From positions 62,001 to 126,000 of the IMG/VR virus record IMGVR_UViG_3300037725_000018: 64,000 nucleotides of DNA. One strand, written 5' to 3'. Shown here piece by piece: positions 3,054 to 63,743 of this stretch. Below the pieces are notes generated by a model. The model made no database searches and was not told the origin of the DNA. It worked only from the letters and a program-made list of their open reading frames with translations. Each line of letters begins with the position of its first letter. Position 1 is the first letter of the stretch. The translations under genes and the position numbers were made by a program.

Positions 3054-3308
3054 TTAAGAAATTTCTCGCGTCTGAATTTCTTCGTTAGACTCTTCGGAAA
3101 GCTCGGTAATTTCGGTGTTAACGGTTTTTCGAAGTTCTTCGTAATCATATGTTTGGCGAAGAAGGTCTACTTGAAGTCTTTCGCTTGGGGCTTGCTCTCC
3201 GTCATACTTGATCTCCCCCTTTGGATTACGCTCGTATTCCGATATTGGAGTGTTTTCGGTTTGAATAATTACGTCTTCAAGCCGGGGATCATCTGTTGGA
3301 ACTGCCAT
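3054..3308 (-). CDS. Hypothetical acidic protein in structural operon
   Basis: 84-aa ORF tightly packed between co-oriented genes. Confidence 0.7.
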   Translation of the reverse strand: MAVPTDDPRLEDVIIQTENTPISEYERNPKGEIKYDGEQAPSERLQVDLLRQTYDYEELRKTVNTEITELSEESNEEIQTREIS

Positions 3309-3699
3309 CGATTGTTACCGTTGTTGTTTTGTCTTCTTGCTCAATTTTTGGACCGTTAAAAACTCTGTTAAAATACCGTTTATAAATCCGATTTCTTCTA
3401 GGTTCTGCCCGGTACTTCACGCCTCTCATGCCTGAACTTTGAAGGAAGTCCCGAATGATTTTCATATTTGTGCGAATGATCTTCATCGGGTTCCCTTCAC
3501 CTGTAAGGTCGTTAAAGCCCCCTTCTTCGGTTTTGAAGCTCCAGTCTACGTATCCCCCGCCTACGTCTTTAAATATCGTTTCATAGCTATTCTCGCCGCT
3601 CTCAAAGCCGAACACAATCGGCCACCTTGCCCGAACTTTACTGTATGGGTAGGTGTCTTTTAAAGCGGCTTCAGCTAGAAGGTCGTTGAAGCGTATCAT
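3289..3699 (-). CDS. Hypothetical protein, MIxFxDLLxE paralogue family (candidate internal head protein)
   Basis: N-terminus MIRFNDLLAE; shares LT(G/N)EG and RxxxY motifs with 9359-9829 and 9826-10329. Confidence 0.7.
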   Translation of the reverse strand: MIRFNDLLAEAALKDTYPYSKVRARWPIVFGFESGENSYETIFKDVGGGYVDWSFKTEEGGFNDLTGEGNPMKIIRTNMKIIRDFLQSSGMRGVKYRAEPRRNRIYKRYFNRVFNGPKIEQEDKTTTVTIDGSSNR

Positions 3700-14584: not shown

Positions 14585-16084
14585 TTACCAAAAGCTATGA
14601 TCGTTTACTTTTGTCTGTTCTTCTGTGATTTTGTTTGACGGGTCTTCATATAGGTCTCTTTTCACTTCCGGAAGGTTTGCCTTCACGTATTCGTTTCTCT
14701 TTTTTGAAATTTCTGCGCTTTCTTCGTCTTTTTCAATGAGAGTGCATGAAACGCCTTCAAGTTGAGCGGCAATACCTGTTGTTCCACTTCCGGCAAAGGG
14801 ATCTAAAACGTGACCGTCTTTTGGCGTTATAAGCCGCACAAGGTATCCCATAAGCTCGATTGGCTTGACCGTGGGATGTGTGTTTTTTTCAACTCCCAAG
14901 TGCCTGTCTTTATCGCCGTTGGCTTTCGGGCAATAGAAAAATCGTGAAGCGCCTCCAGAATCTCCGTGCTGGTTTTGGGGACTGGAAACACCTTCGATAA
15001 ACTCTGTGGAGGGGTCAGATTCGTAACCGGAAACTGCCTCTTTCATCGCTCCTGACTTGGTTTCTCCACTTTGATCATCAAGCATCACCGAAGCCCTTTC
15101 ATCGAGAAAAAGGTTTGCTGGATAACGCCCTTTATTTTCTACTGTGTGGAAAAATCGTGAAGCGCCTCCAGAATCTCCCCGATTTGATGGAGAATTTGGT
15201 TTGTTGTCTGGAACAAATCCTTCCACTTCATAACTTTTTTCATCTGAGTAGTCGTAGGTTTTGCCACCTTCATCAATCCCGCTTTGATCGTCAAGAATCA
15301 CCGACGCTCTATCATCGAGAATCAGATTTGCGGGGTAACGTCCGTCGTTTGACATGTTCCATTCTTTTCCTTCCATAGTGCCTTCGCCTCGCCCTTGATT
15401 TCCCATAAACTTCCCTTCACTAAATCCAGATCCGGTCGTGACGGAAATAGAATCTTGAGTTGTGATTCTACAACCGTCAATATTGATTGCACCTGTGCCG
15501 TGTTTTAGGACGGTTTCAACGACCGTTCCACTTAGAGGCTTCCGGGCAAGAACAATAGGCTCGTGAGCGGGTTTTAACGCAGTCCCCCAACCTTTCCATT
15601 TCTTTGCCTCTTCGGTGGCGGGGGCGGTGATGTCAACTTCTGTTTGCTCAACAGGCTCTCGGCTGATAGCCATATCCCCTTTTTTACCGTTACGTGAGAG
15701 ATCACGGCTAACAGTTTTTTGTCCGACCACCTCGCGCTCGACGCCTGCTGCCTTGTCGAGCGCCTTTGAAACGTCGTGGTTTTTTGGAAATCCTCCACCA
15801 TATATCCACATAAGCGTGTCTCGAATTTCAAATCCGGCGTCTTCAATTGCAACCATCATTCGGTGGTGGGTCCGTGTCCCTCCAAATGCCAAAAGATGTG
15901 CCCCCGGTTTAAGAACGCGGTACACTTCTTCCCAAAATTCTTGGTTGAAGGCAATCCCGGACTCGTCCCACCGCTTGCCCATAAATCCAAGCTCGTAAGG
16001 AGGGTCTGTCACACACGAGTCGAATGTGTTTTCATCTTGATTTTGAAGTTTGTTTAAAGAGTCTCCGCTAATAACATTTACCAT
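14585..16084 (-). CDS. Orphan DNA N6-adenine/N4-cytosine methyltransferase (beta class) with internal 71-codon duplication
   Basis: DPPY near the N-terminus; HPTVKP and DPFAGSGTT near the C-terminus. Confidence 0.92.
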   Translation of the reverse strand: MVNVISGDSLNKLQNQDENTFDSCVTDPPYELGFMGKRWDESGIAFNQEFWEEVYRVLKPGAHLLAFGGTRTHHRMMVAIEDAGFEIRDTLMWIYGGGFPKNHDVSKALDKAAGVEREVVGQKTVSRDLSRNGKKGDMAISREPVEQTEVDITAPATEEAKKWKGWGTALKPAHEPIVLARKPLSGTVVETVLKHGTGAINIDGCRITTQDSISVTTGSGFSEGKFMGNQGRGEGTMEGKEWNMSNDGRYPANLILDDRASVILDDQSGIDEGGKTYDYSDEKSYEVEGFVPDNKPNSPSNRGDSGGASRFFHTVENKGRYPANLFLDERASVMLDDQSGETKSGAMKEAVSGYESDPSTEFIEGVSSPQNQHGDSGGASRFFYCPKANGDKDRHLGVEKNTHPTVKPIELMGYLVRLITPKDGHVLDPFAGSGTTGIAAQLEGVSCTLIEKDEESAEISKKRNEYVKANLPEVKRDLYEDPSNKITEEQTKVNDHSFW

Positions 16085-16114
16085 AACGTTTTGTTCGATT
16101 TTGCATTTATACTT

Positions 16115-16441
16115 TTATCGGACCCGGATTCCCCCCGTATCTGTGCGGCTATATGTTCTTCGGTTTGGTCGGGTGTTTGAAACTCCGGAGTCTTCTTTTT
16201 CCTCTTCGCCCTTGGAAACGGCCTTGAAAAACGTTCGGACGCGCTCTTTTGTCTCTTTCTCTACGTCTAAAAGCTCGCTGTCTGTCATGTCAACATCTTC
16301 TTGATCTACAACTTCAAGAATTGAAGCCGGGGCCTCGTCGTTGTCAAGATAACTTCCTTTTCTATTAACAACTCCAAACTTCTCTGCCCAGCCAATACTT
16401 ACATAGTTTCCAGACTTGGGGTTTAGGATTTCCTCTTTCAT
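16115..16441 (-). CDS. Hypothetical protein
   Basis: 108-aa ORF in operon. Confidence 0.6.
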   Translation of the reverse strand: MKEEILNPKSGNYVSIGWAEKFGVVNRKGSYLDNDEAPASILEVVDQEDVDMTDSELLDVEKETKERVRTFFKAVSKGEEEKEDSGVSNTRPNRRTYSRTDTGGIRVR

Positions 16442-16463
16442 AGGCTTGTAAATTAAATTTTAG

Positions 16464-16943
16464 TTAATTTTTGATTTTTTCAAACGATGAGGGGTAGTCT
16501 AAGTCTTCACACGAGTCTGTTGTCGGTTTTGTTACAACCACATAGTCGTCTTTCATCCATGTTACACAAACAACTCCATCGTGGTTGGGGAAAACATGTT
16601 TTTCGGTAAGAGTTGGGTCGTCAATTTGATTCGGATAGCAGGACACAATGAGGTCTGCAGGCTCTGCCTCTTTTTGAATTTTAGACACTCCACGCTCTTT
16701 GAAGTGTTGAACCCAAACAGATATAGTGTCTCCGGTTATTGGCTCCTTGTTTTCATTAACTTCAATCAGATTAGCATACGCGCCTTCACAGCTTAGGCAG
16801 TTTAAGGCGTTCCACGTCTGTTTTCCATTTGGCTCTTTGAAATATCGTTGATTTACCTGTGGTCCAGTACATGAGACAAGAAACAAAAGAGCCAAAACAC
16901 AAGCTACACGGCCCCAAACTCTTTTACTTTTCACGTTCTTCAT
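16464..16943 (-). CDS. Putative lipoprotein
   Basis: Basic N-terminus, hydrophobic stretch, lipobox LVSC. Confidence 0.65.
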   Translation of the reverse strand: MKNVKSKRVWGRVACVLALLFLVSCTGPQVNQRYFKEPNGKQTWNALNCLSCEGAYANLIEVNENKEPITGDTISVWVQHFKERGVSKIQKEAEPADLIVSCYPNQIDDPTLTEKHVFPNHDGVVCVTWMKDDYVVVTKPTTDSCEDLDYPSSFEKIKN

Positions 16944-17184
16944 CAGCTTTCCAGTTCAAAAATCCATAAATCATAATCCCCATTGTGATGAATGAAGATA
17001 CTACAAATCCGTATTGTCCTGCAATATAAGCTATGATCCCCGCACAAAAAATTGATATCCCTTGAAATACAAATCCAAGCTTGTTCTTCCGAGAAAGAAG
17101 CCACATCCCAAAAAGCCCGAACACAAGGGATATCCAGTCTAATCCATAGTATACTTTAAAACTTTCAACAAGCAGTTCAAACAT
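16924..17184 (-). CDS. Short PnuC-like (nicotinamide riboside transporter-like) 3-TM protein
   Basis: LDWIS..FGL.GMWLL..K..LGF and IYGFLNWK motifs. Confidence 0.55.
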   Translation of the reverse strand: MFELLVESFKVYYGLDWISLVFGLFGMWLLSRKNKLGFVFQGISIFCAGIIAYIAGQYGFVVSSFITMGIMIYGFLNWKADEEREK

Positions 17185-17210
17185 ATTTGAAGCAGAAACA
17201 CTTTTGGTTG

Positions 17211-17250
17211 TGGACCCGGTAGGACTTGAACCTACGACCTTCGTGTTATG
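17211..17250 (-). pseudogene. 3' half of a split resident tRNA(CAT), probably Ile2
   Basis: CATAA-CACGA-AGGTC-GTAGG-TTCAAGT-CCTAC-CGGGTCC-A; truncated at the anticodon. Confidence 0.85.
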
Positions 17251-17297
17251 TAACTTTTCATAGGTCCAATGATATATATTAAAAAAGGGATAACATA

Positions 17298-17828
17298 ATG
17301 AAAAATAGAAACAATTATGAAGTTCAAAAAAAACGTGCGAAGTACCGTAAAATGATGCTTATTGAAAAAGCGGGTGGCGAGTGTAAAAAGTGTGGATATA
17401 GTAAAAACATAGCAGCACTTGATTTTCACCACACTAAAGATAAGAAATTTAGATTAGACTCCAGACACCTTTCTAATTCATCTTGGGATAGAATTTTAAG
17501 AGAGTTTGAAAAGTGTATTTTACTATGTGCAAACTGCCATAGAGAACACCACAACCCGAATTTTACAAAAGATAAAGTAAAATTGGAGTTAGACGAAACC
17601 TACAATCCAAAAAAGTCCACTGAAAATAGATGTTCCGAATGTGGCACTATAATATCATCTAAAGCTAAAATGTGTGTTCCATGTTTTCGTAAAAGTCGTG
17701 AAAAAATCAAATGGCCGGAAACATCTTGGTTAGAAGAAAAAGCTTTAGAATATTCTTTTTCTGCTTTATCAAGACGTTTGGGGGTTTCCGGTAACGCAAT
17801 TCGTAAACGAATTAAAAATCATAAATAA
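17298..17828 (+). CDS. HNH homing endonuclease
   Basis: CKKCG..LDFHH..CILLCANCHREHH, a second CxxC/CxxC zinc finger and a C-terminal HTH; AT-rich; the only clear plus-strand gene. Confidence 0.85.
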   Translation: MKNRNNYEVQKKRAKYRKMMLIEKAGGECKKCGYSKNIAALDFHHTKDKKFRLDSRHLSNSSWDRILREFEKCILLCANCHREHHNPNFTKDKVKLELDETYNPKKSTENRCSECGTIISSKAKMCVPCFRKSREKIKWPETSWLEEKALEYSFSALSRRLGVSGNAIRKRIKNHK

Positions 17829-17837
17829 TCTTCGTCG

Positions 17838-17909
17838 TTGGCCCGATGGGATTCGAACCCATAACCAGTCGCTTATGAGGCGAACGCTCAACCATTGAGC
17901 TACGGGCCA
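17838..17909 (-). tRNA. tRNA(CAT), Ile2 or Met
   Basis: Cloverleaf TGGCCCG/CGGGCCA, loop CTCATAA, TTCGAAT T-loop. Confidence 0.85.
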
Positions 17910-18174
17910 AAATGTATATGCTACGGGTCCTTTCGCTACTTTATGTATTCGACAAATTCAAAAACCGTGCTTGAAGATTTTGCCTTTTCAATCAAACCGG
18001 GAAGGCTGTTTGTATCGTCAACCCGTGTCCAATCGGTCTTTTCCTCTTGACCTTTGTTAGACACTCCAACCCAAGTTGTTCCCATGTTTGTTGAAACTCC
18101 TGTGCAACTACCCGGTGGCTTCTGGCAAGGAGACGTTCCGATCTTTATCGTTCCATCGCTTTTTTCGAAGATTC

Positions 18175-18750
18175 TCATGTCCACATCCACGGAATAAGTT
18201 TTGCGATTCGTTCGTATGCTTCTTGGTCTTTTAATCTAATTCGGCGTTCAAGGCGTGAAGCTTTTGTTTTATAGACTTTTCCTTTGTCTGTTCGCTTGTA
18301 GCCTTGCATTTCTTCAAGCTTTGTGTTTTCTTGTCCCAAAGGAATTCTTTGGTTTCTTTCCATTTCCCTGTATTCGGAGATCACGTCAAGAAGACGCTCC
18401 CGGTCTTCTTTAAACCATTTATACACGCGGTAAGCAGTTCGGTAATACCCGTTTGAACGGCTTGAATTTGCGTTTTGATCCAAAGCGGACAAAACTTCCT
18501 CTTCGGTTTCCGCTCGCCGCGTAGAGCTTTCTTGCTCTTCTACAAACTTGAAGAATTGCTTTTTCATAACAGTTGGCAAACGGTCGGAAGGCTCTGCCCA
18601 CATTCCAACCGGAACGTCTGTTCGGTACAGGTGTGTTCGGGTTTTAAAGTTTGACCGAAATATGCGGAAGGCTCTACGTATTCCACTTGTTTTAGCGTTG
18701 GAAAGAAAATACTTCAAGCCTTCCCACCACATTCGAATCCAATAGATCAT
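18175..18750 (-). CDS. Hypothetical protein
   Basis: 191-aa ORF. Confidence 0.6.
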   Translation of the reverse strand: MIYWIRMWWEGLKYFLSNAKTSGIRRAFRIFRSNFKTRTHLYRTDVPVGMWAEPSDRLPTVMKKQFFKFVEEQESSTRRAETEEEVLSALDQNANSSRSNGYYRTAYRVYKWFKEDRERLLDVISEYREMERNQRIPLGQENTKLEEMQGYKRTDKGKVYKTKASRLERRIRLKDQEAYERIAKLIPWMWT

Positions 18751-20307
18751 GGCAAGTTAAAAATTGTGTTTAGCTTGCAGATAGAAGGCTGTGTGTTGCT
18801 ATTCCATTTCCCGCTTGCTTATGTCACAACGGCGAATTTCCAGTTCATCGGGATCATACCCTTCATATTGAACCAAATCCCGTTTAAGATCCAATACCGT
18901 GCCTGAAACCATTGATTCTACCGGGGTTCCGTTGGCAAGATAAACGTATCCCGCATGAACCGGATAGTTATTTTCAAGAACGGTTTCAGTTTCGTAAATC
19001 ACGCCTTCATCTTTGCTCATTGGTCTTTACTGTTTAGTTGAGATACAGTTTCACTTTCGTTAAAACGCTTTCTCCTCGCCTTTGGTGAAAACACCGAAAC
19101 CCCACGTGTGGGGGAATACTTTCGCCAGAGAGTATTGCCCCAACGAAAGCGTTCCCCCACCGAAAGGGAACCAAAATTCACCTTCTCCTTATTGTTATTA
19201 GTCTTCATTGACCACCTCGAACTTGTCGTTTGGGACCCAAAGCGTAACGTTGTCCGAACGCTTCAAAAGCGTGTACACGTTGTCTTCGGAAAGAACCGTG
19301 CAAACCTCATGCTTTTCAAACGTCACGTTTCCGAATCCGTACGTGTCGTTCATCTTAACCTTTTGCGTACTCATAAGTTTTAAGGTGTTTGTGTCGTGAA
19401 AGTTAGTTGTGAAAAAGGCCCGCCCCCAAGTAGCTAACCTAAGCTACAACCTCTCGCTTCTTCTGGTCTTCCCGCTCGATCCGGGCACGCTTCCGTGCAA
19501 CCTCCTGAATTTCGTCTTCGTAGTCGTCTACCATACCGGACTCGAAGAACTTGGAAGTCACGTCCACGTCCCGGACGTTTCCGTCTTGAAGCGGATTGAC
19601 GGAAAGCAGGTCAACGGTTTCCCCGTCGAACCGTCCGCGAATCTTGTATGCGTTATCGCTGGTCTTGAAAGTAAAAACAGTCATTGTACTTTGTAACTTG
19701 ATTTTGCCTTGTGTTAGTGAATGGGGCTTCCCCCGTTGATCCACCCTTTTTAATGATCTCGGTTAAGAAGGGTTCCAATGTTCTCTGTGAAATTTGTGTG
19801 ACCGCGCAATTCGTTTATCTTCTCCTGCACGTCCAGCTCAATTGATTTTGTTGAATAATCTGTGGATTCAAGTAAGCTCTTGGCCGCTTTAAGCCTTTTG
19901 AGATTATCCGCAGTTTCTAGTAGCTTATTTAGTTTCATTTTCCTTTGTGATTTTGTAATTGACTTCTATTAAATGGCCGTATGCATTTATTTCATCTACT
20001 CTGCAAAACTTGACCTTTGTTGTGTCCTTTGCATTGTTATAAATATATACGTCGCTAGAAGATACAAGATGATCTTCGTATATGTACTTTACCTTAGATT
20101 CGTTTTTAATAACGGTGTACTCGCTGCGTGGGAGACAATTTTTTTCGGTATGTCAAGGCTCAAAATATGTCCCAACCGCAAGCGCAGAGAGGATAACAAA
20201 AAACACGGCAACGCCGTTTTCTTTCTTCCCAATCACCCCAAATACAAGCCCGATTATAAAGGCTACGGAAAAAATTATTAGCCAAAGGCCAAGTACAAAC
20301 ATAATTT

Positions 20308-29641: not shown

Positions 29642-29708
29642 ATAAGTCAAGGGTGACTCTACCAAAGTCCATTTAATCGGCAACTTACCGACCCTTGAAA
29701 AATAAAAC

Positions 29709-29829
29709 AGACTGCAATTGATTTAGTGCTCTGCCAGTTGAGCTACCCGTCCAAAAGCGGACGGGGTAGGACTCGAACCTACAACCTCTCCTTCCATGTA
29801 GGATATCAATGGATTGCTGTATGCAGCCT
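29709..29829 (-). ncRNA. ACAGCA-motif RNA 4 (circularly permuted tRNA-like domain)
   Basis: Stem AGGCTGCA/TGCAGTCT, TACAGCAA, T-arm GTAGG-TTCGAGT-CCTAC, acceptor CCCGTCC/GGACGGG closed by GCTTTT, then TA-GCTC-AACTGGCA-GAGC D-arm. Confidence 0.85.
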
Positions 29830-30295: not shown

Positions 30296-30751
30296 TTACT
30301 TTTGGTTTTTAAATCTCCACACGTGAACATTTTCAGGCAAAACCTCAACTGCGGGTTCTACCTTTGAAACTTTAAGCCCACCGTTTCCGATCCCCGGATA
30401 ATTTAGGTCAAAACGTTTGTCCGAATTCCGGTTCGCAATCTGTCTAAGCAAAAGAGCAGACTTTGCAATCAAAGAAAGATCGGCCTCTTCTTTAAAGTGT
30501 GTTTTTACTTGAAAGGCCACAATCTTGTTTGAAGAGGTTACAAGTCCATACGAACCCAAGTCCCCGCACTTGTTTTGAATCTTCTCTCCAAGCCTTCTGT
30601 CAAGGCCCTCGAACCTATCTCTTGCGGTTTTGGCAATCCCACGCCCCATAACAACCGCACCATTTTTTTTGATGAAGCTGTTTGTTGTTATGCAGAAGGC
30701 GTCGGTTTCTTCATAAACGCTCCACATGTCTCCAAATTCGTAGGTAGGCAT
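30296..30751 (-). CDS. Macro-domain (ADP-ribose-binding/hydrolase) protein
   Basis: GDMW, ITTN..IKKNGAVVMGRGIA, FQVK.H, PGIGNGGL. Confidence 0.85.
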   Translation of the reverse strand: MPTYEFGDMWSVYEETDAFCITTNSFIKKNGAVVMGRGIAKTARDRFEGLDRRLGEKIQNKCGDLGSYGLVTSSNKIVAFQVKTHFKEEADLSLIAKSALLLRQIANRNSDKRFDLNYPGIGNGGLKVSKVEPAVEVLPENVHVWRFKNQK

Positions 30752-31560: not shown

Positions 31561-32220
31561 TCACCCGTACTGGCTTACGCCTTCAAACATATCATACCGA
31601 AGCTTCGCATATGGAAGTGTGTCGATATCGGAAGGCTTAGGATGGGTGAACATGATTCCTTCTACATAGGCATTGTTTTCATGCGCCTCTTGAAAAGACG
31701 TTCCGTGAAACGTCGAATAAAACAGAGGAATCAACCCGTTTTCAAACCAGCTTTCAATTGCGTCGAACGTCTTCGGGTACTTTCCCCAACTTTCGTATTG
31801 AAGCTTTCTTCGGCTATAAGAGCTAAAAGGAATCCAGATGTGTTCGTTTAGGTCATAAGGGTTTCCTTGAACTTTCGGGCCAACGACTTCCCCAAAGTGT
31901 TGACCGTCTGTTAGCGTTTCAACATACCCACGATCTACAGAATTTCGAATTGCATCTGTGATCCTACGGTCCCCATGAAAAGCAGGAACCCGGTTCTTTC
32001 GGTTCATAACTTGAACAATTTGCCCGTTTTGAATCAAAACAGACACGTTTGTTCCGTCAATTTTTTCAATTGCCATTGTACGCGGATCATTAAAAACCCA
32101 ATCGTAGCTATTGCCGTTGTCGTCTGTGTTTACTTCGTCAACGACAAAGTATCCACCGTTTCGCTCTTCACGAACAAACGGCGAATGAATCTTCGGCATG
32201 TCTCGCATAAAAGACTGCAT
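31561..32220 (-). CDS. RNA ligase-like nucleotidyltransferase (start moved off the tRNA-Ile overlap)
   Basis: EKIDGTN (KxDG), GEVVGPKVQGNP, EGIMF and AKLR ligase motifs. Confidence 0.8.
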   Translation of the reverse strand: MQSFMRDMPKIHSPFVREERNGGYFVVDEVNTDDNGNSYDWVFNDPRTMAIEKIDGTNVSVLIQNGQIVQVMNRKNRVPAFHGDRRITDAIRNSVDRGYVETLTDGQHFGEVVGPKVQGNPYDLNEHIWIPFSSYSRRKLQYESWGKYPKTFDAIESWFENGLIPLFYSTFHGTSFQEAHENNAYVEGIMFTHPKPSDIDTLPYAKLRYDMFEGVSQYG

Positions 32221-32269
32221 ATAGAATTGACGTAGCCTTTTAATTAAGCAAATATAAAGAGAGTTTTTG

Positions 32270-32343
32270 TTGTCCCGGTAGGATTTGAACCTACGGCACA
32301 CGATGTATCAGACCGATGCTCTACCAGACTGAGCTACGGGACA
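32270..32343 (-). tRNA. tRNA-Ile(GAT)
   Basis: Cloverleaf, loop CTGATAC. Confidence 0.88.
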
Positions 32344-34189: not shown

Positions 34190-34263
34190 TAGCGGGAAGT
34201 GGATTTGAACCACTGGCCTTCGGGTTATGAGCCCGATGAGCTTCCAAACTGCTCTATCCCGCA
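34190..34263 (-). tRNA. Initiator tRNA-fMet(CAT)
   Basis: 1:72 mismatch, three G-C pairs in the anticodon stem, loop CTCATAA. Confidence 0.9.
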
Positions 34264-34935: not shown

Positions 34936-35008
34936 TAACCCCGGCAGGAATCGAACCTGCAACTAGACGGACATGAACCGTCTGCTCTACCGATTGAGCT
35001 ACGGAGTT
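34936..35008 (-). tRNA. tRNA-Met(CAT), atypical loop
   Basis: GACGG-TTCATGT-CCGTC (G37, U38). Confidence 0.82.
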
Positions 35009-35702: not shown

Positions 35703-35856
35703 GAGAATGTTGCATCCACCACCTTAGCGGGATTCGAACCCGCGACTACCGCAATCTAGCGCGGCACTCTGACCTACCTGAGTTATAAGGTGTCACCAAC
35801 GGCGGTGGGATTCGAACCCACAGATACCGATCAAGCACCGTTACAGCAACATTCTC
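35703..35856 (-). ncRNA. Double tRNA-like RNA enclosed in an 11-bp stem
   Basis: GAGAATGTTGC/GCAACATTCTC encloses an anticodon-less mini-tRNA and a cloverleaf (35719-35792) with a 6-nt loop. Confidence 0.7.
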
Positions 35857-36192: not shown

Positions 36193-36296
36193 AGACATAA
36201 AGCATTAGGATTCGAACCCTGTTTTTTAAGGCTTCGGCACCACATTTTACGGATTCGAACCGCGCCGGGTGCGACCATACCAACCACTTTATGTCT
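36193..36296 (-). ncRNA. Structured RNA with two T-loops in a 10-bp closing stem
   Basis: AGACATAAAG/CTTTATGTCT; GGTTCGAATCC twice. Confidence 0.6.
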
Positions 36297-44188: not shown

Positions 44189-44701
44189 TTAGTGAAACAC
44201 ATATGGCTTCCAAGATTCATCTAATGTACCCATATTTTTGAAGATCGAGAAGTATGTTGGTCGGTAAATATCCAAGTCCTCTTTTCCGGTTCCAAGAATA
44301 TCTTCGACCTCCGAAAGCGGCTTGTCTCCTTTCGTTTGGTTGCAACTTTTGCAAGCGGTCACAAGATTTTTCCACGTGTTCTTTCCACCTTTACTTTTTG
44401 GTTTGACGTGATCTAGCGTAAGATTATCTTCACTTCCGCAGTACACGCACTCGTGATTATCTCGCTTGTAAATGTTTGAGCGGGTAAGGCTTACGTTGCC
44501 TCGGGGACGCTGCACGTACTGTTCAATCACCCGGACAATGGAAGGGGCATAAATTTCTGTAGATGGAGAGCGAAGAACCGTGTTTTCATAGCGGTTGATA
44601 ACTTCTACCCGGTTTTTAAACTCCAACGTAAATCCTCTCTCAATAGGAACAACGTAAAGTGGTGTGTAATCTTTATTTAGAACAAGTGTCTGCTTATTCA
44701 T
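44189..44701 (-). CDS. HNH endonuclease (McrA-like HNH family)
   Basis: LVLNKDYTPL, RD..CVYCG, LTLDHVKPKSKGG..W.NLVTAC..CN..K. Confidence 0.92.
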   Translation of the reverse strand: MNKQTLVLNKDYTPLYVVPIERGFTLEFKNRVEVINRYENTVLRSPSTEIYAPSIVRVIEQYVQRPRGNVSLTRSNIYKRDNHECVYCGSEDNLTLDHVKPKSKGGKNTWKNLVTACKSCNQTKGDKPLSEVEDILGTGKEDLDIYRPTYFSIFKNMGTLDESWKPYVFH

Positions 44702-45817: not shown

Positions 45818-45860
45818 GGTAGCCCCGGTGGGGATCGAACCCACACTGAACAGTTTTTAA
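45818..45860 (-). pseudogene. 3' half of a split resident tRNA-Leu(TAA)
   Basis: T-TAA-AA-ACTGT-TCAGT-GTGGG-TTCGATC-CCCAC-CGGGGCT-ACC. Confidence 0.85.
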
Positions 45861-45949
45861 TGGTACTCCCGGAGGGACTCGAACCCCCAATCCATATTTC
45901 AGGCGTCTGATCTTAAGTCAGAAGTGTATTCCAATTCCACCACGGGAGC
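45861..45949 (-). tRNA. tRNA-Leu(TAA)
   Basis: Class II cloverleaf, TCTGA-CTTAAGA-TCAGA, encoded CCA. Confidence 0.92.
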
Positions 45950-45957
45950 ATATACTT

Positions 45958-46572
45958 TTAGTTCATGTTAATGCTGTTTTCATCTATCAAACGTTTACAT
46001 CTATAATAATTTCCACCTTTCGCTGCTAATCCTACTTCTAACAATGCCTGTCTTATATTATCGTTTCGTTTCAAAGATGAAATCAATGTTGAATCACTCA
46101 CCTTTTTGCTTCCGGTATTTATATTTCTTCCTCTAAAGTAACTTGTCTGTGAATGGCAGTTGGGACAGAGAAGTCTCAAATTTTCAACACGGTGGTCTAG
46201 GCTATTGCCGTTTATGTGATCTATTTCTAAAGTTATGGGTTTTCCATTCCATGTATCCGATAAACCGCACTCATAACACTTTTCTTTCAAAATGCCTTTT
46301 TTTAATGCAAATTTTTTAACATACGCTCCCGGAAGATTAGAGTTCTTTTGAAAAACTTCTTCCTTTGATTTCAGCAGTTTTCCTTTTGACCAATCTCTTT
46401 TGCCATCAAAGTGAGAAAGGTCTTTTTTTCCCTCTTCATAAGCTTTTTTCAGACCATTGCTATTCTTCTTTTTAACTTATGGACACTTTTGATATGTTTC
46501 TTCGCAACATTTTTTTCCATTACTTAAAACATACCTTGCTTCTCTATCGCAACCATAATCGCACTTATTCAT
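45958..46572 (-). pseudogene. HNH homing endonuclease with premature in-frame TAA at codon 32
   Basis: ATG at 46572 (MNKCDYGC...KCP*VKKK) is in frame with CYECG..LEIDHINGNSLDHRVENLRLLCPNCH; TAA at 46477-46479. Confidence 0.8.
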
Positions 46573-46631
46573 TATACCTACTTTTTTAATTCATTCGCGG
46601 ATATATAGTAGGTATACGAAAGTTTTAATGG

Positions 46632-46664
46632 TTAAACTGCCTCTTCCGGTTGGGCTACAGGGCC
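46632..46664 (-). pseudogene. 5' half of the split tRNA-Leu(TAA)
   Basis: GGCCCTG-TA-GCCCAACCGGAAGAGGCAGTTT; GGCCCTG pairs with CGGGGCT and GCAGT with ACTGT of the 3' half. Confidence 0.8.
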
Positions 46665-50809: not shown

Positions 50810-50896
50810 CGGAGAGCGGAGGCATCGAACCTCAAGATTTTTCAATCTCCATCTGATTTCGAATCAGCGATAGGTGCCAAACCTACGTCACTCTCC
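50810..50896 (-). tRNA. tRNA-Ser(CGA), atypical
   Basis: Loop TTCGAAA, long variable arm, extended D-stem. Confidence 0.75.
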
Positions 50897-50900
50897 ACAG

Positions 50901-61169: not shown

Positions 61170-62252
61170 TTAGTTGTTGTTCCACGTTCGACGTTCAAGC
61201 CCGTAACGGTCCACAAACTTTTGAACGTAGTATCGGGAAACGGATTCGGGAATGATTCCACGGTCCCGAAGTGCCCGGTGCGTTGCAGACACGTTGCCGT
61301 TGTTTTCGTTTAGAACCTCTCTCGCAACGTCTACGTCAAGGTCTTCCATAATGTCATACTCTTCCCCGCCCGTAGACGAACTTTCGTTAGAAGCGTTCTC
61401 TGAGGCTTGAGTGGACTCTCCATTTTCGGACGTTCCGTTAAGAAGGTCTTCAATGGAATCGAAGTTATTTTTCTTTTCGTTTCTCTTCCGCTCTTTTTCG
61501 GCAAATTCACGGGCTTCGTCGTGGGTTTTCTTTTTGTGCTCGTCAAACTCGATGCTACTGTTCGTGATTTGAAAATACAGCCGTTCGTTTCCGTTTCCAC
61601 GCCGATTTTTGTCAAACATCATATACCGTTCTTCCCCATCCCACCGAAGCATAAGGCTTGCGGTGATAAGGTGCTTTAGCATGTTTGACCCGGTAAATTC
61701 ACCGGACTTGTTTACCTGTTGGATAAGGCCGAAAGAAGTGTAGTACACATCCCCGTCTACTTCCACCCCTTCGGTCATGTCGTACATGAGGTTGATCAGA
61801 TTAAGAATCGTTGACTTTTTTGTGGACGTGTTCATCGAATAGGCAAATTCAAGAAACGCGGCCCAACTGTCAACGACCACATAATCATACCCTTTTTGAA
61901 GCTCTTCTTCAAAGTCTTCAACCGGGTTACTTCCGGTTCGTGTATCCACGTACCAAACAGGAATGTCCGCAAACTCCGGAAACCTACGTGTCATGTATGC
62001 CACGTCATTCTTCCGCATTTCAGCAGATACAAACAGGACATTATATCCCGCTTCATTCATGTTCGATAGCATGTCCATCGTAAACGTAGACTTTCCGATT
62101 CCCGGATCACCGAAAATCATCGTAACCGTTCCACGGGAAAGCCCACCATCTGCGGACAGGAAATCATCCAGAACATCATGCCCGGTCGAAAGAGGCTCCC
62201 AAAGCTTAGGATCAATCGTTTCATTCGAAATCTTCGTCGTCTCTACAGACAT
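61170..62252 (-). CDS. RecA-superfamily ATPase (RadA/Sms-like N-terminal domain) with C-terminal HTH
   Basis: GDPGIGKST, FVSAE, VVVDS, NKSGEFTGSNMLKH, KNR. Confidence 0.85.
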   Translation of the reverse strand: MSVETTKISNETIDPKLWEPLSTGHDVLDDFLSADGGLSRGTVTMIFGDPGIGKSTFTMDMLSNMNEAGYNVLFVSAEMRKNDVAYMTRRFPEFADIPVWYVDTRTGSNPVEDFEEELQKGYDYVVVDSWAAFLEFAYSMNTSTKKSTILNLINLMYDMTEGVEVDGDVYYTSFGLIQQVNKSGEFTGSNMLKHLITASLMLRWDGEERYMMFDKNRRGNGNERLYFQITNSSIEFDEHKKKTHDEAREFAEKERKRNEKKNNFDSIEDLLNGTSENGESTQASENASNESSSTGGEEYDIMEDLDVDVAREVLNENNGNVSATHRALRDRGIIPESVSRYYVQKFVDRYGLERRTWNNN

Positions 62253-63280: not shown

Positions 63281-63329
63281 AGAATATAGACATTAATATT
63301 TGAATTGAAAACAGATAAAAATTTTATAG

Positions 63330-63743
63330 TGGACCCGGCGGGATTCGAACCCGCGTCCGCAGCACCTTTGCAACATCGGTTGTCACAGTCTTAGAATGGT
63401 CTTTATTTTTGACCGACAGACTATTGTATTAGACCACACAAAAGTTTGTGGGTTTTATTTCAACCCGCTATCGGACTTGTTTTACGTTCTGCCTACCAAG
63501 CAAAACAAGTTGAAGCCCAGTAGGAATATCCGATGGTGTGTGCCTTACTCTCTATCGGAGTCGAGAAGTAAGGCTGCAGTTACGCCGCAAGAGAAGCGCC
63601 GAAGTGCTCCTCCATGTTGACGCCTGCAGGAACGCGGTTAACGTTGCCAAGTATTGATTCCGTCAGTTATTTTATGCCCACCTAACGGTAAGGGCAGACT
63701 GCCGACCTTGCTCCGCGTGCTACGTCGAAGCCGTGTCAGGCCC
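63330..63743 (-). ncRNA. ssrA: tmRNA
   Basis: 5' GGGCCTGACACGGCTTCGAC, 3' GGACGCGGGTTCGAATCCCGCCGGGTCCA, G3:U70; tag frame 63648-63580 GNVNRVPAGVNMEEHFGASLAA*. Confidence 0.92.

Follow-up and report, generated by a model that had tools for sequence, protein, structure and literature searches.

The stretch of DNA analyzed here, referred to as the window, comprises 64,000 nucleotides (positions 62,001 to 126,000) of the IMG/VR record IMGVR_UViG_3300037725_000018, from a tidal-flat phage of roughly 223 kb. Within it, a tRNA(CAT) gene is interrupted by a short segment that contains a second, complete tRNA(CAT) and an HNH endonuclease gene, with the elements arranged as follows:

17920..17930, minus strand: 5' remnant of the resident tRNA(CAT), GGACCCGTAGC, i.e., acceptor strand, U8, A9 and G10-C11 (positions 1-11)
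17910..17919, minus strand: 10-nt spacer between the remnant and the carried tRNA, forming the left end of the cassette
17838..17909, minus strand: carried, intact tRNA(CAT), with a U1-A72 first pair, anticodon loop CTCATAA and discriminator A
17298..17828, plus strand: HNH endonuclease gene, 176 aa
17251..17297, no strand assigned: 47-nt leader between the HNH start codon and the resident 3' piece
17211..17250, minus strand: 3' piece of the resident tRNA(CAT), i.e., anticodon CAT, 3' anticodon-stem strand, variable loop, T arm, acceptor strand and discriminator A (positions 34-73)
17251..17919, no strand assigned: the inserted cassette as a whole, 669 nt

The carried tRNA was identified by ARAGORN and scores 69.4 bits (E 1e-14) with the Rfam tRNA model, against a family threshold of 29. 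It folds as a canonical cloverleaf, with a 7-bp acceptor stem, D, anticodon and T arms, and a 7-nt anticodon loop with U33, and has one U27-C43 mismatch at the top of the anticodon stem. It is 62% identical to the resident tRNA, from which it differs in every anticodon-stem pair and in the D loop, while its acceptor and D-arm resemble those of the tRNA carried at a locus labeled L128, discussed below. No donor with this exact tRNA was found in IMG/VR.

The HNH protein matches PHROG HNH families at 3e-22 and 2e-21, and has an N-terminal HNH/zinc motif, a second CxxC...CxxC finger and a C-terminal helix-turn-helix, the last supported by a weak hit. It has 496 homologues; in 16 homologues, H44, H45, N79, H81, H85 and eight Cys, among them C29, C32, C77 and C80, are invariant, so that the nuclease looks intact. 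However, comparison with solved structures returned the McrA HNH motif only weakly (E 0.004), and a fold search with a good AF2 model (pLDDT 84) gave only weak HNH-domain matches (E>0.2), so that no specific structural relative was identified. The gene has no paralogue in the window and is transcribed opposite to all its neighbors; almost every other gene and all the tRNAs lie on the minus strand. Its GC content is 0.33, and that of the whole cassette 0.347, against 0.43-0.44 in the flanks, which, along with the divergence of the carried tRNA, points to a foreign origin. A scan for promoters and terminators around the cassette returned nothing above chance, and no promoter-like site was found for the HNH gene.

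The 5' remnant is the only exact copy of this 11-mer in the 64 kb, where about 0.33 matches with up to one mismatch are expected by chance. tRNAs with the same acceptor stem are common in phage contigs, although none is close to the resident, and for this reason the 11-mer is generic for this class of tRNA. What ties it to the 3' piece is instead the covariation at the two acceptor positions where the remnant differs from the carried tRNA (G1 and A3), for which the 3' piece has the matching partners (C72 and T70), together with the existence of an uninterrupted allele. The latter is present in eight contigs from eight samples or runs (loci L120-L124, L295, L301 and L302), one of them from the window's own sample, which are collinear with the window at about 88-91% identity and have neither the HNH gene nor a second tRNA. 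Their breakpoints against the window fall exactly at 17920 and 17250, and these two positions are joined, skipping 669 nt, through 23 nt that complete a normal 74-nt tRNA(CAT) (for example, L122:1492-1565). The same joint was recovered in sequencing runs X5 and X7. Since the empty allele contains 23 nt that the cassette allele lacks, the cassette allele is the derived one. The ancestral locus held one intact tRNA(CAT) between an 84-aa gene and a PnuC-like gene, and in the lineage of the window 669 nt replaced tRNA positions 12-33.

The arrangement is not an assembly artifact, because 100% identical contigs bearing the cassette come from independent JGI and Logan assemblies, and the depth is flat (269x) across the cassette in run X1. 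Other searches were less productive: a DNA search of cultured phages gave only generic tRNA-level matches and no relative of the locus; exact searches of IMG/VR with the 3' piece and with the carried tRNA, as well as a search with two flanking proteins, returned only the window's own contig; and a first metagenome scan for the 3' piece gave nothing, because that collection evidently lacks these samples.

These findings confirm the original prediction with regard to the position of every element, and its proposal that a mobile segment with an HNH gene and a whole, sequence-divergent tRNA(CAT) was inserted into a resident tRNA(CAT) gene and destroyed it. However, the claim that the gene is split at its anticodon needs to be corrected: 23 nt were lost, only the 3' junction lies at the first anticodon base, and the event is therefore a replacement and not a clean split. 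As for the further proposals, that the tRNA gene is the target of the nuclease has only family-level support, while the resistance of the carried tRNA to cleavage and its ability to compensate for the loss are inferences.

The family-level support is drawn from the genomic context of the relatives of this enzyme. The five closest homologues (50-66% identity) are all next to a tRNA(CAT) gene, and 62 of 80 IMG/VR relatives have a tRNA within 400 nt. At the locus labeled L129, the HNH gene is beside a tRNA(CAT) whose anticodon loop holds a group I intron (81 bits), and nine metagenome relatives lie inside group I introns within tRNA genes (55-83 bits). Interestingly, the same layout of 5' piece, spare tRNA, HNH gene and 3' piece recurs independently and without an intron: in L128 and L149, with a canonical tRNA(CAT) between matching pieces; in L150 and L135-137; and in L141/143/144/172/197/142/134/231, with a non-canonical tRNA-like RNA. 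In these cases the 3' junction is always in the anticodon arm, from stem position 30 to the anticodon, and the HNH stop codon is often the TAA of CTCATAA, whereas the 5' junction varies between positions 11 and 29.

Taken together, we favor, with reasonable but not full confidence, a free-standing homing endonuclease aimed at the anticodon arm of the tRNA gene, which carries a replacement tRNA instead of a self-splicing intron. In this view, which is inferred from context, the HNH enzyme recognizes the DNA of tRNA genes and cuts in or next to the anticodon arm, as would be expected also of its relatives that reside in group I introns at that same site. A break in the resident gene was then repaired from a donor in which the HNH gene lay next to its own tRNA(CAT), and this repair was illegitimate, because no homology or microhomology is seen at either junction, so that the endonuclease gene and the neighboring tRNA went in together. 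The interrupted gene could then no longer be cut, because the site is gone, while the carried tRNA is presumed to be uncut and to take over decoding, which would make the insertion nearly neutral for the phage. Once established, the cassette could spread among related phages by ordinary homing through the long flanking homology. The stumps are still 100% identical to the intact allele while the flanks differ by 6-16%, which fits a fairly recent event.

Some observations weigh against parts of this scenario. With no homology or microhomology at either junction, the founding event cannot be reconstructed. All eight contigs of the variant haplotype are empty, including those reached through the variant's PnuC-like and 79-aa proteins, and all the cassette-bearing contigs are 100% window-type, although both types co-occur in several samples (runs X5 and X7, and sample 3300037725); thus, there is no sign of ongoing homing into the co-occurring relative, at least at the level of contigs, which would hide rare recombinants. 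The amino-acid identity of the two tRNAs, elongator Met or Ile2, could not be decided: both have anticodon CAT, A37, A38, A73, C4-G69 and U12-A23, but only the carried one has C29-G41, which is listed as an E. coli Ile determinant (PMC9976931), and the names given to similar phage tRNAs in databases are mixed. Moreover, the window also has a tRNA-Ile(TAT) and two other CAT tRNAs, so compensation may not have been needed.

Among the alternatives, the one that survives best, although unlikely, is a passive insertion, in which a fragment of the tRNA cluster of another phage, which happened to hold a tRNA and a free-standing HNH gene with some other target, was pasted into this gene by random illegitimate recombination. 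The lack of homology at the junctions and the absence of recombinants among the contigs are compatible with it, and HNH genes are common between phage tRNA genes in general, as in Salmonella phage SPLA5a. However, the same layout recurs in unrelated contigs with different tRNAs and different HNH-tRNA order, the 3' junction is repeatedly in the anticodon arm, and relatives of the enzyme are intron-encoded at tRNA anticodon loops. In addition, a tRNA gene is about 0.1% of the window, so a chance hit is unlikely.

It is also doubtful that the pieces still work, for instance as a half-tRNA or tRNA-like molecule acting as a decoy for anticodon nucleases or as a primer, with the layout kept by selection. 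The leader holds GGACCTATG (17267-17259, minus strand), which resembles the 5' end of another tRNA(CAT), compare the 5' ends GGACCTATAGC... of the split tRNAs in L141-L144, and whose GGACC at 17267-17263 can pair with the 3' acceptor strand; we read it, by inference only, as a possible scar of an earlier insertion site. Both pieces of the resident gene are fully conserved against the intact allele, and the window encodes RNA-ligase-like and phosphatase-like proteins inside the tRNA cluster. Nevertheless, the Rfam tRNA model gives only 22.6 bits for 17211-17267, below the threshold, the D arm and the anticodon stem are absent, and the conservation, known from a single cassette-bearing haplotype, is equally explained by a recent insertion. 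Nor do the two pieces form a split, trans-joined tRNA, because positions 12-33 are absent from the window.

A decayed group I intron, which once spliced from the anticodon loop and then lost its ribozyme and part of the 5' exon, is very unlikely: relatives of the HNH do lie in such introns, and the 3' junction is within three nucleotides of the classical intron site after U36 seen in L129, but no group I signal was found in 16800-18300 even at E<=10, the HNH gene is on the strand opposite to the tRNA, the insert contains a complete foreign tRNA, and the uninterrupted allele in close relatives has no intron. Finally, even though tRNA genes are the classical targets of integrative elements, which carry tRNA sequence, a miniature integrase-type island is contradicted by the anatomy of the locus, because there is no integrase or recombinase in or next to the 669 nt, where the HNH gene is the only ORF with a family match, there are no direct repeats at the ends, and the tRNA is not restored.

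Several known systems share features with this locus. T4 SegB is also a free-standing endonuclease among phage tRNA genes, its recognition site includes conserved tRNA-gene sequence (the T-psi-C motif), it is absent from close relatives, and it transfers itself together with neighboring tRNA genes into endonuclease-less phages (PMC2330249). However, SegB belongs to the GIY-YIG family, is intergenic, and transfers by homologous co-conversion of a shared region, leaving no broken tRNA, whereas here the cassette sits inside the presumed target gene, 23 nt are lost, and both stumps remain. Endonuclease-bearing group I introns in tRNA anticodon loops have the anticodon arm as their target, including that of CAU tRNAs, with an insertion point within a few nucleotides, and the relatives found here share the HNH domain; in the window there is no detectable ribozyme, the ORF is on the other strand, part of the exon sequence is deleted, and any rescue of function comes from a second gene and not from splicing. 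In intronless and collaborative (trans) homing, as for SegF, mobE/I-TevIII and F-CphI with the psbA intron (PMC3984707, PMC2790892, PMC6083498), the endonuclease gene lies beside a gene whose allele in the donor is immune and travels with it, and L129 looks like the collaborative form. In those systems the immune allele replaces the sensitive one by homologous gene conversion, while here the presumed immune copy and the endonuclease gene were inserted into the presumed sensitive copy of a heterologous locus. In fractured genes, an endonuclease gene divides an essential protein gene into two pieces flanked by split inteins (PMC2677866), and compensation is by protein trans-splicing of the halves, whereas here the target is an RNA gene, the halves are probably dead and a whole spare gene is supplied. 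Lastly, integrative elements and prophages that land in tRNA genes also bring tRNA sequence that keeps the host supplied, but use an integrase and att repeats and rebuild the gene from a duplicated 3' segment, none of which is present here.

Homing endonucleases can occupy essential genes only if the damage is undone, and the textbook solutions are self-splicing introns and inteins. This locus, with its empty-site allele in hand, appears to document a third solution for an RNA gene, with the endonuclease arriving together with a complete spare tRNA and leaving the old gene as two stumps. No description of a split tRNA gene with a carried tRNA was found in the literature searched, although this does not prove that the layout is undescribed. 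Because relatives of the same enzyme use the intron solution at the same site, the two strategies can be compared within one protein family. The finding would also give a concrete mechanism for the rapid, patchy turnover of tRNA genes in phage tRNA arrays, genes that are now known to matter in the contest with bacterial anticodon and tRNA nucleases (for example, SegB and tRNA-Tyr, PMC13096335), and it offers a natural nuclease family likely to recognize defined tRNA-gene sequences.

More tentatively, it is possible that large phages harbor a widespread, so far undescribed class of intron-less homing cassettes that invade tRNA genes at the anticodon arm and bring their own replacement tRNA, which in some lineages is a non-canonical tRNA-like RNA with an Ile anticodon and no 5' D arm. 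Endonuclease-driven replacement, rather than duplication or capture from the host, would then be a main motor of tRNA-gene turnover in phage tRNA arrays, and carrying a spare would be an alternative to riding in a self-splicing intron for colonizing essential RNA genes. A second cassette, tRNA-Leu(taa) plus HNH, for which an empty site was sought without success, is carried by all the relatives found, at 94% and 76% protein identity.

The window is part of IMGVR_UViG_3300037725_000018, a 223-kb viral contig from tidal-flat metagenomes, and carries 40 tRNA genes and a tmRNA, all on the minus strand, as are almost all of its protein genes. When the region is read in tRNA sense (minus strand), the following elements are encountered:

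17930-17920, minus strand: the 11-mer GGACCCGTAGC, a 5' tRNA piece.
Ten bases of spacer.
17909-17838, minus strand: a 72-nt tRNA(CAT), called by ARAGORN and scoring 69.4 bits with Rfam.
17298-17828, plus strand: a 176-aa ORF.
A 47-nt leader.
17250-17211, minus strand: a sequence that is exactly the 3' part of a tRNA, from the first anticodon base to the discriminator.

The ORF encodes an HNH endonuclease: PHROG HNH families match it at 3e-22 and 2e-21, and the catalytic His/Asn residues and eight cysteines are invariant among its homologues. In addition, a helix-turn-helix tail gives a weak Pfam hit, the AF2 model has a pLDDT of 84, and the GC content of the gene is 0.33 against 0.43-0.44 on either side. 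The 11-mer occurs once in the window, and where it differs from the carried tRNA (G1, A3), the 3' piece has the complementary C72 and T70; therefore, the two pieces belong together and not to the carried gene.

The decisive result is that an empty site exists. When contigs of four tidal-flat runs were aligned to 15500-19500, a joint from 17250 to 17920, which skips 669 nt and holds 23 other letters, was found in runs X5 (depth 7.9) and X7 (depth 12), and the X7 contig, of 1214 nt, spans both flanks. A search with the 84-aa flanking protein then found an 88%-identical cluster, whose contigs (L120-L124, L295, L301 and L302) come from eight samples or runs, with L123 deriving from sample 3300037725, the window's own. 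These contigs are collinear with the window over up to 5.6 kb at 86-91% identity, and the alignment breaks exactly at 17920 and 17250. Between the 79-aa gene and the PnuC-like gene they hold a single canonical tRNA(CAT) (for its sequence, L122:1492-1565), whose first 11 and last 40 nt are identical to the pieces of the window and whose middle 23 nt (positions 12-33) are what the window lacks, and they have no HNH gene and no second tRNA. The empty allele contains sequence that the occupied allele lacks, so the occupied allele is the derived one, in which 669 nt replaced 23 nt. Cassette-bearing contigs from other assemblies are 100% identical to the window, and depth is flat across the cassette in run X1, which excludes a chimeric assembly. 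Contigs of the variant haplotype also skip or replace about 132-144 nt at 15616-15761, inside the 499-aa N6/N4 DNA methyltransferase gene (14585-16084), an indel polymorphism in a repetitive part of the protein.

Regarding the origin of the cassette, the carried tRNA is only 62% identical to the resident, no closer than the window's other CAT tRNAs are, and it is foreign rather than a duplicate; nothing in IMG/VR has its 5' half. The HNH protein has 496 homologues, and all five of the five closest are tied to a CAT tRNA. The locus L128 (66% identity) shows the same theme with the inner order reversed, namely an 18-20-nt 5' tRNA piece, the HNH on the opposite strand, an intact tRNA(CAT) whose acceptor and D arm resemble the carried tRNA of the window (both U1-A72), nine bases, and then a 3' tRNA piece whose acceptor strand pairs with the 5' piece. 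In L129 (65%; 707-1561) the HNH, again on the opposite strand, lies just upstream of, and head-to-head with, a tRNA(CAT) whose anticodon loop is interrupted after U36 by a 194-nt group I intron (Rfam 81 bits), an arrangement that resembles collaborative homing. Finally, L130, L131 and L133 (59-50%) have the HNH directly beside an intact tRNA(CAT) in tRNA clusters.

In the wider family, 62 of 80 IMG/VR loci with 30-55% identical relatives have a tRNA within 400 nt. In many of them the ORF runs into a 3' tRNA piece, and its stop codon is often the TAA of the anticodon loop CTCATAA. In a cultured Seunavirus, Salmonella phage SPLA5a (OR413583.1, 13811-14364), an unannotated HNH ORF related to this family fills the gap between tRNA-Tyr and tRNA-Ile and overlaps the start of tRNA-Ile. 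We required a T arm plus acceptor strand downstream, a fully pairing 5' acceptor strand followed by U8 upstream, and the HNH between them; among 167 loci, 32 such cases were found, including the window, and three kinds of case emerge.

The first kind comprises group I introns: nine of the twelve metagenome cases tested have a group I ribozyme (55-83 bits) after a shortened HNH ORF inside the tRNA. These endonuclease-bearing introns (L246:3138-3448, L255:601-900, L284:3189-3451, L289:3176-3431, L279:906-1140, L249:3193-3481, L266:975-1246, L281:3188-3442 and L273:1169-1411) come from soil and freshwater metagenomes, lie mostly in tRNA genes of the TCC...GGAG type with an anticodon-loop context that in L289 suggests GTT (Asn), and each carries an HNH ORF related to the N-terminal domain of that in the window. 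The second kind consists of cassettes without a ribozyme that hold a canonical tRNA between the pieces: the window, L128 and L149, all CAT, together with L150 and L135-137, which were found by inspection, and L256, which holds a tRNA-Ile(tat). The third kind also lacks a ribozyme but holds a conserved non-canonical tRNA-like RNA, and includes L141, L143, L144, L172, L197, L142, L134 and L231. In the second and third kinds, the 3' junction falls in the anticodon arm, from stem position 30 to the anticodon itself, while the 5' junction varies from position 11 to 29.

This tRNA-like RNA (L141:2348-2424, L144:2348-2424, L142:2318-2394, L134:2231-2308, L139:2041-2117 and 3283-3359, L153:2181-2258, and L231 near 2700) travels with HNH cassettes inside split tRNA(CAT) genes. 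It has a 7-bp acceptor stem, a T arm, and a hairpin with a 7-nt loop carrying TAT or GAT (Ile anticodons), but no D arm on the 5' side; after the hairpin come the motif TAGAAAGGG and a D-loop-like TTGGTTA. In seven sequences, 15 of 21 predicted pairs show compensatory changes, although neither ARAGORN nor Rfam calls it a tRNA. Moreover, in two unrelated contigs, L149 (3078-3615) and L231 (2306-2615), a tmRNA gene lies immediately next to a split tRNA(CAT)/HNH cassette; the phage-encoded tmRNA of the window is at 63327-63743 (91 bits).

These data establish an insertion that destroyed a tRNA(CAT) gene and brought in an HNH gene plus a different, complete tRNA(CAT). The layout described in the original prediction is confirmed, whereas its interpretation, that a selfish element destroys its target and compensates with a divergent, cleavage-resistant tRNA, is partly supported, with the enzymology inferred in the absence of biochemical evidence. 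We infer that the HNH is a homing endonuclease that recognizes tRNA-gene DNA and cuts in or near the anticodon arm, and its intron-borne relatives would be expected to do the same. The constant 3' junction and the variable 5' loss fit a break at the anticodon arm with resection or illegitimate joining on the 5' side. It could be speculated that the build of the enzyme (N-terminal nuclease, zinc-finger linker and C-terminal helix-turn-helix) would allow binding on the conserved T-arm side and cutting at a distance. On this reading, the occupied allele is immune because the site is gone, and the carried tRNA, which differs from the resident in all five anticodon-stem pairs, the D loop and the variable loop, is presumed to be both immune and functional. 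Neither junction shows homology, so the founding event is inferred to have been illegitimate, while later spread among strains would use the long flanks. However, the two haplotypes co-occur in several samples, yet all eight variant contigs are empty and all occupied contigs are window-type, so that no ongoing homing is seen at the level of contigs, which hide minority forms. Flank identity peaks at 94-99% within about 150 nt of the tRNA and falls to 84-90% beyond, which could be a co-conversion tract or simply conservation. The leader holds GGACCTATG (17267-17259), which resembles the 5' end of split tRNAs elsewhere, and L128 has a T-arm fragment in front of its carried tRNA; both are read as possible scars of earlier host sites.

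As for amino-acid identity, which is open for both tRNAs, the resident and the carried tRNA both have features listed for E. coli tRNA-Ile (C4-G69, U12-A23, A73), but only the carried one has C29-G41 (PMC9976931). The window also has an initiator-like CAT tRNA (34190-34263), with a 1:72 mismatch and three G-C pairs in the anticodon stem, a second CAT tRNA (34936-35008, minus strand) with the unusual anticodon loop TTCATGT (G37, U38) and an A1-U72/A2-U71 acceptor end, and a tRNA-Ile(tat), and the lost gene could be either elongator Met or Ile2.

Among the alternatives, random pasting of a tRNA-cluster fragment is made unlikely by the recurrence of the layout and by the junction pattern. A function for the stumps cannot be excluded, but it rests only on a sub-threshold score (22.6 bits). 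A decayed intron is contradicted by strand, content and the lack of any ribozyme signal, and an integrase-type element is excluded by the anatomy.

The closest known systems are T4 SegB, a free-standing endonuclease in a tRNA cluster that recognizes tRNA-gene sequence and carries neighboring tRNA genes along (PMC2330249), intronless and collaborative homing (PMC3984707, PMC2790892, PMC6083498), and the so-called fractured genes, in which an endonuclease gene splits a protein gene and split inteins repair the product (PMC2677866). What differs here is that the endonuclease gene sits inside the RNA gene without any splicing device, and that a whole spare gene travels with it, a layout for which no description was found in the full-text literature searched.

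A second cassette of the same theme is present in the window at 45818-46662 (minus strand), with the following parts:

about 46662-46630: a 5' tRNA piece.
Next, on the tRNA strand: an HNH ORF of another family (PHROG phrog_10822, 4e-36), broken in the window by an in-frame stop near 46478 but intact (204 aa) in the relatives L296/L297.
45949-45861: an intact tRNA-Leu(taa).
about 45850-45818: an orphan T arm plus acceptor piece, whose acceptor strand can pair with the 5' piece.

Relatives at 94% and 76% protein identity all carry this cassette, L299/L300 hold a different, 75-nt tRNA(taa), and no empty site was found. A third HNH endonuclease ORF (PHROG phrog_16726, 2e-34) lies at 44189-44701 (minus strand), between tRNA-Val(gac) and tRNA-Leu(caa), and the relatives L296-L300 have it too, as 75-aa or 170-aa versions.

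Further tRNA stumps or tRNA-like RNAs may exist in the window, as T-arm-like motifs (stem, TTCRANYC loop, stem) occur on the minus strand outside any called tRNA near 36252, 36209, 35809, 35177, 29770, 28080 and 27506, some of them followed by acceptor-like strands. Two sub-threshold Rfam matches were also obtained on the minus strand, one tRNA-Sec-like (50810-50897; 40.6 bits, threshold 47), directly next to tRNA-Cys, and one YrlA Y-RNA-like (29699-29822; 40.5 bits, threshold 69), which contains one of the orphan T arms. ARAGORN reports a separate tRNA at 35719-35792 (minus strand) with a two-base anticodon ("ag"). Lastly, RNA-ligase-like (31561-32301; PHROG 9e-9) and phosphatase-like (30296-30751; 1e-19) ORFs lie on the minus strand inside the tRNA cluster, and they may form a tRNA repair pair.
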